DNA of 33,934 bases from Octopus sinensis (taxonomy: Eukaryota), in contig NW_021831915.1 of the NCBI RefSeq assembly GCF_006345805.1, forward strand, positions 1 to 33,934, read 5' to 3'. Below are positions 28,078-33,475 of this stretch, in pieces (position 1 is the stretch's first letter; the number at the start of each line of letters is the position of its first letter). The notes beneath the pieces were generated by a model, which saw nothing but the letters and a program-made list of their open reading frames with translations, had not been told where the DNA came from and did not search any database. Both the position numbers and the translations under genes were made by a program.

Positions 28078-31000
28078 TTATTTGTCAAAATAAAAGAAAG
28101 CAAAAGATTGACGTCCAAGAATAATTCCAAAAACCATCAAAGAATTGTCTGAAACATCCAAACCAAGAACTTCAAAGACTTCATTATCATCCCATCTGAG
28201 GAGTAAATATTTTGGATTATCTTTTAATCTCAGGATTTCATCATCTTCAGATGTTTCCTCTTCAATATGTCGAGGTATTTCGTAAATATTGTTATTTAAA
28301 TCTGTTATATAAACACATTCACCAATTATGGTCAGACGAGGTCTTGGAATATAATCTTCCGGACCTAAAATTATTCCTCTTTCTATTCTTATCTTCCTCA
28401 CCAAAGACTTTTCCCTGAACCATTCCACAAAACACAAATATTCCCAAAATTCTAACTCCTCCTCCTCCTCCATCTCCCTCCTCACAACAACAACATCACC
28501 AAAAGATGTGACTCCCACACCATCCACCCCTTCATCTCCCTCCAACCTTCCCCATCTCCCCATCTTCCCACGACATACTTCATCTTTACATTTCCCATCT
28601 TTGATATCAACCACATCCACATAATAAGGGTCAAAGATGTAGGGGTCATTGCAAACATAGTAATCCTTGTTGTTCTCCCACATTCTTTCGTATTTCTTGT
28701 GTCTCTCTTCTTGAGTTATGTCTCTAATATAATGACCACCACACACGAGTTGATTGTCGTTGTATTTATAAATCCTGTTGTAGTATTTCTCAGTTCTGAT
28801 GGTTTTTAAACGACGGAGATCCCTGTCAAAGACCCTCATTTCTCTCCCAAAGGCGACAATGAAACATTCCTCTGTCCACCGACAAATGTCCAGTGGTGGT
28901 CGTTGTTGTTGTTCATGTTGAAGTATGTCCACTGTTGTTGTTGTTGTTCTGATTAATGTGACACTTTCTCGAAACATCAACACACTCACATTCTCATCTA
29001 ACTTAATTAGTTTACTGTTCCGGTCCCTAATGTCCCTCAAATCATAATCAACAGGTTCCTCGAATGCAGGAATGGAAAAAGGGACCATTGCTGTCCTATA
29101 TGGAAGTCTCCTCACTGATATTTCATCAATTCCTGAATTATTAATCTCCGCTATGTAATTACCACATCTCACCTTTAATCTACCTTTACCAATTATTTCA
29201 CCTGATTTACCTCTTCTCCCTCCATCTCCATCTCCTCCTCTGTGTTCCAATTTATTAATTAATTCATTACTGAATATTTCCTTGTTTGTTTCAGATGTAA
29301 TGGAAGGGAAACGAAGACCAGAATCAAGATTTAATGACGACACAGATTCCAGAATGTTCACTTGGTCCCCATCAATCTTTATGCAATGACATTCAATCAA
29401 TTCAATATGTACACACCAGTAAATACCCGCCACTTTTCTCCATATTACACCATAAGGGATGAGACTCAACCAAACTTGAGATGTCTGCAAATCTTCTCCA
29501 TTCAGTTGAAATATTTCTTTCCTGTTAGGAACTGTGGCCATTATGTGTGATTCTTGTGTAAAACACACACCACCAACTAAACTTGCAACATTTCTGTGAC
29601 GTAGCAACTGGCCGTCTTCATCGAATATTTTAACATTTCCATTATTGGCTTTTTCACACACAACTGTCTTTCCTTCCTCAGAGACATCAAAATCTTTTAC
29701 TTGAACAGGACATTCGTCTGTTTGTAAACGAGCAACCGGGAAGCTGTCTCGATTCACCGTAAACAACCCTTCAACATACAATTCATTCGTTCCCCTCATG
29801 GGGCTTCCAACAAACCTTGGTCCTTTACAGTCTATACTGGAGAAATCTACTTCTTCTTTATAGATTCTTTTATTTAAAAATATTCTCTTGTATTCCCCAT
29901 TCTGGGTCAAACACAAAATGTTTCGATATTCAGATGAACCAGAACATTTCTCCCACCCACATTGAATGTACAAAAAACTGTCATCAATTGTCATCCTGTC
30001 ATCACCAGAATAATCATCCATGTAGTGTCTGACTGAATGTAAATATTGACCACCACTGTTGAAGAAAATGATGAATCTCCTGTTGAAGACAATGATGACA
30101 TCTTCATCAGTAACTTTAATATCCTGGATTCTATCAGAATAATTTCCATCTTCGTCTCTCCTTATTAATAGTTCAGGTATGTCTATTTTTTTTTTTTCCT
30201 CCACACTCGAATGTATTTCATCAATATCAACAAAATGCAAATGTCTTCCATCTCCCCATTCACTAAAAACCAGTTGATTGTTTGATAAAGAAGCCACACA
30301 ATTATATTTATTTCTCGTTTGGTAAATTACCAATGACAATGGAAATTCCACTTTTAATGTCAACAGTTGGGATTTATTAGAAAGATCAAAAATATCCCTC
30401 ATCGTAATGACCAGTGTGTTTGACTGCCATCGACACATTTTAATATATCTATAAACATTCACTTTGATTGAATCCATAAGGTGACCATCCAATGTGAATA
30501 TCTTAATGTTTCCATTCTCCTTGTCACATCCTGCAATCAGATTATTTTCAGTAAGAACCAAATGATTAATCCTCGCTGGTCCTTTGTCTCCCAAATGTTT
30601 AGGGAGAGGAATATGTCTGGCTTTATCAGAAACTGTCAGGTCCTGTAGATATAAAGTGGAAGACAACATTTCACTGAGAGAAATGTTTCTGGAAAATACA
30701 TCCACCAGGTCGATATAATAATTAAGTTGATTATTAGTAACGAGATCATTAACCAACAAATTCTGATCATTTATGGCAAACATATGGCTTCTGTCTATCA
30801 GATAAACAGACGTTTGGTCAATTGATCCACCTTGGAGACTGAGGGGACGTTTCACTTGGGACATTAAAACACTGGGAACCATCTGACAACCGCCATGACC
30901 ACCACCACCTATTCTAGTGTTGTACTGAAAAGCTTTTCCCCTAGTAACAATTAATAGCTTTTCTGTTTTCTTGTCTATTGATAATGATTTCACAAAAACA

Positions 31001-31839: not shown

Positions 31840-33475
31840 TAGGATATGGACCTCGCTTTTGTTTCCACTTGGTGGCTAGAGCTAAACACTTATTTGATAC
31901 AAAATGACATAGTTTAATGTAATCAGTATGGACTTTCATTAAAGGGCCTTTCATTAGCCCAGGGCATGTGATACACTGAAATTCTTTGTTTTCATGGTAA
32001 AACACCAAAAATCCTTTAGAATTCATTCTACAAAAGCAAGAAGGAATCTCAGGGAAAGTTGAATTATTTTGGTTAATTATTTCTCCAGTCTCAGTGAATA
32101 ATATAGCTTTATTATTCCTGTAGAATATTAATATAGAAGATGTAGACATAGGTAGAATATTAGTAATGTTGTAGCAATCCTCAATATAAATATAGTTGTT
32201 CAATGTTGGGGTCCATAGCTGGGGGTTATATGACTGCCTGGGCCAAAAGTCTTCATTTGTTCCAATGATATAAAGGACATCAAAATAATCGGTTACAAAA
32301 ATGTTTTCTTTGCCAACAGAAATATGGCGGCATTTCATGCCAATTTCTCTTGTTGTCACAGCACCTGTACCCGATATCTGATAAATAATATGTCCCTGAA
32401 GGACATAAAAATGGTTTTGGTACACAGAGATGTGGCTTGGAATGTCCAGGGAATTTGTATCCACCTCAAATAACTGCTGGCCATCCACATTGTAACAGGT
32501 AACCCTGTTAATATTGGAAAAGGATACTAAGAGTTTATTTTGTGCTCCTACAGCAATATCTGAAGGGGTTTCTTTCGTTATGAATTCGTATTTTATTCTA
32601 TTCTCTTCCCAGTCAATGACGTATATGGTCTGACCAAACATTTCTACACCTATAAGCGTGGAATGTTCCAAATAAGAAACCAAGATTAATCCTAGCTGAA
32701 TTCTTTTGATTTCAAAACTTAAAGGGTTGATAATAAGAATCATTTTTCGAAATGGGAGGGTGGCCAGGACTGTGTCTTGACTGATTCTGGTAAAATCAGT
32801 GACAGAAGATGAGCAATGAACTTCATTTCTGTTGCCGACTCTTGTTATACAACATATTGTCATACAGTAGTGGGAATATGTTACAATACCCCCTTGTATG
32901 ACAACAATATTGGATATTGGGTTGCTTAAGTCTTCACCAGATTCCTCAATCTCTACTTCTCTGGTCACAACTGGCCGAAGAGGACGAAACTTTGTGATTA
33001 CTTTTGGTGGTTCAATGGTCTTGTGGTTGTATGGGTTACAGGTGACATAAATGTCAAAGAGTCTTTGTTGAAACCAATCAAGGTTTTGGTGAACAAAATC
33101 ATTATTTTGTTCTGCAATTTCCAGAAATCTTGGCATTTTACGTTTGATATTACGTAAAATTCGAGATCCATCTAAACCCAGAGAGTCCATGTGATTACAT
33201 TTAACCTTTACATAATCTATAAACGTATTGATGTGGTCTGTTTTGATTAGTGTTCGGTAACATGTCACAATATGAAGGAAACTTGGTAACATGGACTTTT
33301 CCTGTTCTTTAGATTTCTTTGTGTCTTTTCTTTCCTGTTCTTCTGTTTTCTTTGTGTTTTGTGTATGTAATATTTGGGGAAGAATTGGTGTAGTTTCCTT
33401 ATAAATTGCTGTTGTATCACAGACTGTGGCAGGAATGAGAGCCAACATTTTGTTTTCTTCATTAATCTTCTCCAT
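31823..33475 (-). CDS. 5' segment (550 codons) of the same multi-propeller protein
   Basis: ATG in strong context (AAAATGG). A charged/helical ~165-aa leader precedes propeller-like blades (PSDIAVGAQNKLLVS..NRVTCYNVDGQQLF, PSHISVYQNHFYV). Overlaps the next ORF by 17 nt in another frame. Confidence 0.88.
   Translation of the reverse strand: MEKINEENKMLALIPATVCDTTAIYKETTPILPQILHTQNTKKTEEQERKDTKKSKEQEKSMLPSFLHIVTCYRTLIKTDHINTFIDYVKVKCNHMDSLGLDGSRILRNIKRKMPRFLEIAEQNNDFVHQNLDWFQQRLFDIYVTCNPYNHKTIEPPKVITKFRPLRPVVTREVEIEESGEDLSNPISNIVVIQGGIVTYSHYCMTICCITRVGNRNEVHCSSSVTDFTRISQDTVLATLPFRKMILIINPLSFEIKRIQLGLILVSYLEHSTLIGVEMFGQTIYVIDWEENRIKYEFITKETPSDIAVGAQNKLLVSFSNINRVTCYNVDGQQLFEVDTNSLDIPSHISVYQNHFYVLQGHIIYQISGTGAVTTREIGMKCRHISVGKENIFVTDYFDVLYIIGTNEDFWPRQSYNPQLWTPTLNNYIYIEDCYNITNILPMSTSSILIFYRNNKAILFTETGEIINQNNSTFPEIPSCFCRMNSKGFLVFYHENKEFQCITCPGLMKGPLMKVHTDYIKLCHFVSNKCLALATKWKQKRGPYPIDQRR

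Follow-up and report, generated by a model that had tools for sequence, protein, structure and literature searches.

The question raised by this locus is what two long open reading frames (ORFs) in it encode. The stretch of DNA analyzed (33,934 nt, positions 1 to 33,934 of contig NW_021831915.1 in the Octopus sinensis assembly GCF_006345805.1, referred to here as the window) is AT-rich and eukaryotic in base composition (GC content about 0.26–0.43), and long ORFs are scarce in it except for two on the minus strand (31823..33475 and 28078..31839). Our analysis indicates that the region is quite likely a frameshifted copy of an uncharacterised octopod multigene family, whose proteins carry six NHL-like beta-propellers of the TRIM type and would act as multivalent binders with specificity in the fourth and sixth propeller modules.

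The preliminary description of this sequence reported that the two ORFs together span 5398 nt (3n+1) with no intron. Both ORFs are as described and the coding sequence is intronless; 5398 nt equals 3 × 1799 + 1, and the joined protein has 1,799 residues. The 3n+1 length was thus confirmed, while its meaning, a frameshifted copy that is probably non-functional or truncated, had not been concluded. The chance of 1253 open codons at the base composition of the window is about 1e-40, and an intact O. vulgaris paralogue (P0002, locus L001) is 91% identical to the window coding region in amino acids (aa) and 95% in nucleotides. The coding features are:

28078..33475, minus strand: whole coding region of a family member, 1,799 codons plus stop, coding sequence without intron, one frameshift.
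31823..33475, minus strand: ORF A, 550 aa, ATG start.
28078..31839, minus strand: ORF B, 1253 aa.
31870, minus strand: single-base insertion (extra A) splitting the frame, located by nucleotide alignment with the intact copies L001, L004 and L005.

A two-part signature had been proposed to recur six times along the protein at a spacing of ~680–870 nt. All 11 peptides were found within ~15 nt of the coordinates given for them, and the first-part motifs, at residues 226, 479, 746, 1012, 1302 and 1529 of the joined protein, are spaced by 227–290 aa, which corresponds to 681–870 nt. The second-part 'Y' motif is present in modules 2–6 as suggested, at a distance of 37–46 aa rather than ~40–55 aa. 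Self-BLASTP of the joined protein gave no internal repeat at E ≤ 10, so family profiles were needed to reveal the repeats. When 200-residue chunks from an alignment of 20 family members were compared profile to profile, the modules (M1–M6) were similar in register with the signatures (M3 and M6, 95%, E = 1.7e-8; M4 and M5, 93%; M4 and M6, 92%; M1 and M3, only 47%). The self-comparison called for in the preliminary description, blank by BLASTP, was therefore positive at the profile level. Judged from sequence profiles and structural models, the family protein starts with an orphan stretch of ~185 aa, after which come six propeller modules. These are listed below with AlphaFold2 (AF2) strand and blade counts and with hhalign percentages against the cephalopod propeller profile described further on:

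32921..33475, minus strand: N-terminal region (aa 1–185), family-specific and highly variable (mean family identity 34%).
32201..32920, minus strand: predicted Module 1 (aa 186–425), 23 strands, ~6 blades, motif TDFTRISQ; AF2 predicted local distance difference test (pLDDT) ~80–88; hhalign 95.9%.
31378..32200, minus strand: predicted Module 2 (aa 426–700), 24 strands, ~6 blades, motifs SCFCRMNS and YIKLCHFVSN, holding the frameshift; AF2; hhalign 92.3%.
30598..31377, minus strand: predicted Module 3 (aa 701–960), ~20 strands, ~5 blades, motifs TDICRWDS and YVRVCKMGEG; AF2; hhalign 98.5%, over the first ~125 columns only.
29713..30597, minus strand: predicted Module 4 (aa 961–1255), 23 strands, ~6 blades, motifs IKMCRWQS and YNCVASLSNN, variable; AF2; hhalign 99.0%, 216 aligned columns.
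29017..29712, minus strand: predicted Module 5 (aa 1256–1487), motifs GGVCFTQE and YGVIWRKVAG; AF2; hhalign 96.0%, over the first ~115 columns only.
28081..29016, minus strand: predicted Module 6 (aa 1488–1799), ~23 strands with long hairpins, motifs LDICRWTE and YNRIYKYNDN, variable; AF2; hhalign 95.5%.

AF2 was run on two halves of the protein (mean pLDDT 72 and 69; predicted template modelling score, pTM, 0.38–0.60). Both came out as all-beta in the prediction, their four-stranded units following one another in runs with low-confidence linkers in between, and the first-part signature forms the first strand of blade 2 in every module, with the Y motif one blade later. The predicted strand number is 23–24 in M1, M2, M4 and M6, ~20 in M3 and ~16 plus a disordered insert in M5. 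Module 3, the most conserved of the six, is followed by a low-confidence helical linker. Module 5 is modelled as ~3 blades (~12 strands), a disordered Gly/Arg-rich insert (aa ~1382–1460) and ~1 further blade (4 strands). Profiles and models thus agree with six tandem propeller-like modules as originally proposed, except that M3 and M5 appear to be incomplete propellers, shorter than a full six-bladed one. Foldseek searches of both halves against PDB returned multi-propeller proteins as best matches (E = 1e-22 to 1e-12), including IFT-A, LRP2/LRP4, DDB1, Utp21 and axonemal WD proteins. Their template modelling (TM) scores were low (0.15–0.25), as expected because domain orientations differ.

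To which class of propeller do these modules belong? No above-threshold Pfam match was obtained in the window ORFs or in 26 family members, only sub-threshold domains of unknown function (DUFs); the NHL model (PF01436) had zero matches in the window protein and the 26 members, WD40 had none in either, and Ldl_recept_b and EGF had none in the window protein. A phmmer search against PDB sequences gave nothing significant. A family profile of M3–M6 matched PDB sequences weakly, namely the NHL domains of TRIM71, Brat and TRIM2/3 (E = 0.02–0.2) and one WD40-like blade. In an exhaustive hmmsearch of 1.84 billion (1.84e9) representative proteins, the next tier after the matches below E = 1e-10 consisted of cephalopod RING/B-box/NHL proteins, aligned over the whole propeller; for instance, the entire C-terminal propeller of a cuttlefish protein with RING, B-box and NHL (P0090, Acanthosepion pharaonis CAE1315789.1) aligns with module 4 (E = 2e-7). 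Pfam NHL repeats are present in the relatives P0091, P0094 and P0096, with a B-box also in P0091, and P0095 has no Pfam match. Used as a word-index query, the cuttlefish protein gave only four matches, none of them naming the donor family.

An alignment of these TRIM-type propellers (P0090, P0091 and P0094–P0097, with P0097 outside the Pfam scan) served as the profile for the hhalign values listed above. The aligned length was 177–216 columns for M1, M2, M4 and M6 and 115–124 columns for M3 and M5, and reversed-sequence controls reached at most 0.3%. All six modules therefore have domain-length homology to proteins that bear Pfam NHL repeats. The two-part signature is also found in the TRIM-type proteins, for example 'PPHGICLWANYEVVVTLP ... 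KSYESVASPDYCRLVCS' in P0090 (in an alternative quotation, 'HGICLWANYEVVVTLP ... KSYESVASPDYCRLVCS'). These alignments identify each module as a homologue of the six-bladed, NHL-like propeller found at the C-terminus of cephalopod TRIM-type proteins, and 'amplified TRIM derivative', as the preliminary description put it, is thus a fair account of the origin of the family.

A different explanation is that the NHL resemblance is convergent or generic, and that the modules represent another propeller class (WD40, YWTD or Kelch) or an independent invention. It could draw on the WD40 and YWTD multi-propeller proteins at the top of the Foldseek matches, on one M5 blade that matches cyanobacterial WD40 repeats and a designed WD40 blade, and on the lack of a direct Pfam NHL match. 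However, those WD40 matches span only ~60 aa, a single blade of M5, and the Foldseek matches reflect multi-domain shape at low TM-scores, whereas six of six modules align in register with the TRIM-type domain, reversed controls are negative and the two-part signature recurs in the TRIM-type proteins. We regard convergence as very improbable.

The family is restricted to octopods, according to the sequences searched. Homologous protein clusters numbered 67, all from Octopus vulgaris, O. sinensis, O. bimaculoides or Argonauta hians (the A. hians homologue with 41% identity), and every one is annotated as 'uncharacterized' or 'hypothetical'. Full-length members have ~1,660–1,915 aa, typically ~1,780–1,800 aa. 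The protein is not 'hidden', as had been supposed, since intact paralogues of 1798–1801 aa are already annotated as hypothetical proteins. Among 28 hmmsearch matches below E = 1e-10, 15 were traced to their source, and 15 of 15 were from Octopus or Argonauta; the other 13 are short fragments. No orthologue outside octopods was found among the proteins covered by that search, and the idea of a lineage-specific concatemer holds in that all traced relatives are octopod. Literature searches (LOC identifiers; octopus combined with NHL, TRIM, beta-propeller or intronless) returned no description of the family, in line with its earlier designation as an undescribed system. Each of the three Octopus species also has, on a ~200-Mb chromosome, a distant paralogue with six modules (P0069/P0098/P0099), which shares 32% identity with the window protein. 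Conservation of this paralogue (P0069/P0099) reaches 94% when O. vulgaris is compared with O. bimaculoides, against 86% for a pair from the fast-evolving group (P0046/P0047), and this slowly evolving copy is a possible founder of the family. As a separate observation, the annotated gene model of one member (P0017; 1788 aa), which extends over 23 kb and contains introns, appears to be chimeric.

The absence of RING and B-box domains noted earlier was borne out by the Pfam scans of the window protein and 26 members. The N-terminal region has no detectable relative among PDB sequences and scored 0.1% by hhalign against the propeller profile; its profile scored 0.7% against the pre-propeller (coiled-coil) region of P0090, P0091 and P0095, no dedicated coiled-coil predictor having been used. 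No transmembrane segment was predicted (the maximum 19-residue hydropathy of 1.48 is below the usual threshold), and the N-termini of other members are basic or acidic, not hydrophobic, which points to an intracellular protein. With no RING, B-box, signal peptide or membrane segment, the family protein most likely works in the cytosol or nucleus as a scaffold that has no ligase activity itself.

Is the family under selection? Neutral dN/dS, which together with a lack of transcription would have refuted the proposal according to the preliminary description, was not seen, either between species or in M1–M3 and M5 of recent copies. P0046 (O. bimaculoides) and P0047 (O. sinensis), taken as orthologues by sequence similarity with homology that extends no further than ~300 nt before and ~185 nt after the ORF, have dS of 0.18, dN of 0.07 and dN/dS (ω) of 0.40, with ω of 0.27–0.38 over most of the protein and 0.73–0.83 in the last ~500 residues. 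Per-module ω was calculated for the six pairs formed by four recent O. vulgaris-type copies (the window, L001, L004 and L005). The conserved modules had low values (0.18–0.57 overall; M1, 0.27–0.35; M2, 0.34–0.57; M3, 0.25–0.48; M5, 0.18–0.45), while in six of six pairs ω was 1.4–2.4 for M4 and 2.0–3.5 for M6 (ω > 1, one-sided binomial test, P = 0.004–0.2 per pair; M4 + M6 versus M2 + M3 + M5, Fisher test, p = 8e-7 to 3e-5). M5 is nearly invariant among recent paralogues. The variation in M4 and M6 is concentrated in patches, with further M6 patches at aa 1596–1612 and 1640–1647:

29923..30021, minus strand: hypervariable patch in module 4 (aa 1153–1185), mostly predicted loops.
28342..28473, minus strand: hypervariable patch in module 6 (aa 1669–1712).

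The modules also differ in their history. In comparison with a more distant intact copy (L006f), dS is 0.03–0.10 in M1–M3 and M5, against 0.34–0.9 in the N-terminus, M4 and M6. In L004 (paralogue P0004), M1 is foreign (dS ~0.75) and the remaining gene has dS of 0.04–0.16; such divergence of M1 alone indicates that single modules are exchanged between family members. Mean identity among 20 members is 34% in the N-terminus, 52% in M4 and 49% in M6, compared with 61%, 65% and 63% in M2, M3 and M5. Taken together, the module-wise dS contrasts, the foreign M1 of L004 and the per-module identities show that the copies are mosaics. We infer that the conserved modules are homogenised by gene conversion, and that diversity persists in the N-terminus, M4 and M6.

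Copy-number turnover, pseudogenes and localised ω > 1 are typical of genes in evolutionary conflict with pathogens, with selfish elements or over reproduction, and the family possibly has a role in immunity or genetic conflict. In such a role the hexa-propeller protein would be a multivalent binder in which M4 and M6, perhaps with the N-terminus, carry ligand specificity for a fast-changing target, and the conserved propellers would hold invariant partners. Candidate targets are RNA or protein of a pathogen or selfish element, or another conflict partner. The main alternative to a conflict role is that the family acts like classical TRIM-NHL proteins such as Brat and LIN-41/TRIM71, that is, as sequence-specific mRNA regulators with six RNA-binding propellers rather than as conflict or immune molecules. 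RNA binding is established for the NHL domains of Brat and LIN-41; outside the family, TRIM-type NHL propellers are the closest relatives, and the weak direct matches are to the NHL domains of TRIM71, Brat and TRIM2/3. However, housekeeping RNA regulators are usually single-copy and conserved, whereas the octopus family has dozens of fast-evolving copies with ω > 1 in two modules, and we consider the regulatory role unlikely.

How did the copies multiply? Amplification took place mainly on one small chromosome: at least 33 of the 67 clusters lie on a single O. vulgaris record (OX597841.1, 29.19 Mb), with copies at 9.57, 10.30, 21.9 and 22.66 Mb in both orientations. Coding sequences of 5397, 5139 and 5154 nt are each annotated as one exon. 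The flanks of the window copy hold two relevant features:

33576..33620, minus strand: polypyrimidine tract plus CAG, ~120 nt upstream of the ATG, putative acceptor of an intron in the 5' untranslated region (5'UTR); similar motif in L001, L002 and L003.
25880..28077, minus strand: 3' flank duplicated along with the gene, 89–97% nucleotide identity in paralogous loci, with indels.

The polypyrimidine-CAG element lies ~120–200 nt upstream of the ATG and is kept even between members that are ~50% identical in protein, which suggests a splice acceptor; on this conservation, a 5'UTR intron is probable. Paralogous loci match the window over a stretch that takes in at least 459 nt before the ATG, as far as the right edge of the window, and on the other side reaches ~25,880–26,000, 2.1 kb past the stop, and the 5' ends of the shared blocks differ between paralogue pairs. 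Sharing of kilobases of flank with variable block ends shows that the copies spread by segmental duplication, not transposition.

A rival account holds that the ORF is part of a transposable element, a retrogene burst or an integrated virus, so that copy number would reflect mobility and not host function. The copies are indeed many (84–95% identity), have intronless coding sequences and occur in both orientations on the chromosome, and some gene models are fused to DUF4371 or zinc fingers. However, Pfam scans of the members gave no transposase, reverse transcriptase, integrase or capsid domain, the gene ends showed no poly(A) tail, target-site duplication or terminal repeat, purifying selection acts on four modules, and the fusions involve neighbouring genes (e.g., the C2H2 exon at 23378–24157). 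We rejected the transposon or retrogene idea on the variable duplication boundaries and the absent mobility domains, and we give the mobility account almost no weight, less even than convergence. For the 'retroposed, amplified TRIM derivative' of the preliminary description, this leaves the TRIM-type homology in place and retroposition unsupported, in view of the putative 5'UTR intron, the lack of poly(A) or target-site duplication and the co-duplicated flank.

Is the window copy itself still a gene? When the joined protein was aligned to the window by tblastn, frame A ran to 31871 and frame B began at 31869, and at 31870 the window reads 'CCACCAAGTGGAAAC' where L001, L004 and L005 have 'CCACC-ACTGAAAAC'. 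Past this insertion, frame A meets a stop at 31823–31825 after 550 aa. The locus may then hold only a dead pseudogene making a fragment of at most 550 aa (N-terminus, module 1 and most of module 2), a view that concerns the window copy alone and is compatible with the description of the family. We lean somewhat towards it. The extra A sits inside a cluster of three differences and outside any homopolymer, unlike a typical sequencing error, and a look-up of the 550-aa ORF found no identical protein. Copies of the family commonly decay, since L006, in the neighbouring O. vulgaris cluster, has a copy at 4141–9340 (minus strand) split into three ORFs beside an intact 1784-aa single-exon copy at 27573–32927 (plus strand), and L005 contains gene fragments (20137–22589). 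On the other side, neither frame has a single stop codon on its own side of the frameshift, and substitutions on the window lineage have ω of ~0.5, not above that of intact copies. The lesion is therefore very recent or an assembly artefact, and a long-neutral copy was rejected on the same two observations. The window copy is probably a very young pseudogene or a gene truncated to 550 aa.

Several points weigh against the reading of the family as a six-propeller, TRIM-derived binder. The Pfam NHL model matches no member directly, and matches to solved NHL domains are weak (E = 0.02–0.2). M3 and M5 align over about three blades only, and their closure into propellers is no more than putative in the AF2 models (pTM 0.38–0.60). 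The tests for ω > 1 are pairwise, non-independent and singly of moderate significance (P = 0.004–0.2), and indel-rich acidic segments of M6 could inflate dN. The window copy is itself frameshifted, and the databases searched held no transcript evidence and no member from an SRA-derived assembly.

Other features of the window were also recorded. A zinc-finger ORF of 259 aa at 23378–24157 (minus strand) encodes at least seven C2H2 fingers (Pfam zf-H2C2_2, E = 5e-60), and an 84-nt tandem periodicity is found at 23365–24027. In L005, a comparable zinc-finger gene follows the paralogue at a distance of a few kb, on its downstream side, some O. vulgaris models (P0008) fuse the propeller gene with zinc fingers, and the two genes seem to have been duplicated together. 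The region 21000–24000 has strong positive GC skew (0.24–0.27) and AT skew (0.14–0.16), unlike the rest of the window, and partly overlaps the zinc-finger exon on the minus strand. Interspersed repeats of ~200–450 nt at 4900–5340, 7560–8100, 8280–8740 and 12720–13260 recur often in paralogous loci (66–89% identity, more than 10 copies in L006) and are probably short interspersed element (SINE)-like or other octopus repeats. Positions 27586–27674 and 27990–28060 (minus strand), 3' of the stop, contain trinucleotide runs, (TCT)n and (GAT/GGT)n, together with a short stretch that resembles a tRNA, 'GGGAATCGAACCTGC'; neither ARAGORN nor Rfam identified an RNA gene in the window, this tRNA-like stretch included.

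Among known systems, the closest are the cephalopod TRIM-type RING/B-box/NHL-like proteins (P0090 and relatives P0091 and P0094–P0097), whose C-terminal propeller of ~250 aa is homologous to each octopus module (hhalign 92–99%) and shares with it the position of both motifs, the signature as the opening strand of blade 2 and the Y motif one blade on. The octopus family differs from them in its six propellers, its other N-terminus and its lack of ligase domains. Classical TRIM-NHL proteins (Brat, LIN-41/TRIM71, TRIM2/3, Thin) share the six-bladed NHL binding platform, with weak direct matches (E = 0.02–0.7), but they have one propeller and are conserved and low-copy, and the octopus modules are not scored by Pfam NHL. 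The YWTD arrays of LRP2/LRP4/LRP6 and the tandem WD40 proteins DDB1, IFT-A and Utp, top Foldseek matches, likewise combine several propellers per chain for multivalent binding; such receptors and scaffolds have no sequence relationship to the octopus family, and the similarity is at the fold level only. Unlike the octopus family, the LRPs contain EGF spacers, a signal peptide and a transmembrane segment and are extracellular, and DDB1, IFT-A and Utp proteins have seven-bladed WD40 propellers. The TRIM5 cluster of mammals, which comprises amplified, fast-evolving restriction factors, offers a functional analogy only. By that analogy, TRIM5-type clusters resemble the octopus family in copy-number turnover, pseudogenes and positive selection, which in TRIM5 is focused on the target-recognition domain, but their recognition domain is SPRY and not NHL, and RING is kept.

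Lineage-specific gene expansions are well known in cephalopod genomes, and most 'uncharacterized' octopus genes are without structural or evolutionary description. No example of six NHL-like propellers in one chain was found in the literature, and we know of no other such protein. The hexa-propeller architecture and the modular hypervariability are thus undescribed, on a known NHL-like propeller. For annotation, it matters that the cluster mixes intact genes, mosaics and fresh pseudogenes, and that Pfam-negative 'hypothetical' Octopus proteins can be assigned by profile-profile methods. The family gains an origin, the TRIM-type NHL-like propeller, and a testable logic of conserved versus hypervariable modules. 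As a speculation that we hold to be rather doubtful, octopods might possess a private intracellular recognition repertoire of dozens of hexa-propellers, four of the modules kept constant by gene conversion and M4, M6 and the N-terminus diversified by positive selection and reshuffled between copies; derived from TRIM proteins but lacking a ligase, such a repertoire would be analogous to diversified innate immune receptors or restriction factors, with viruses, transposons or another conflict partner as its targets. If it is true that the variable modules set specificity, the family would represent a new kind of invertebrate recognition repertoire and a natural concatenation of propeller domains.

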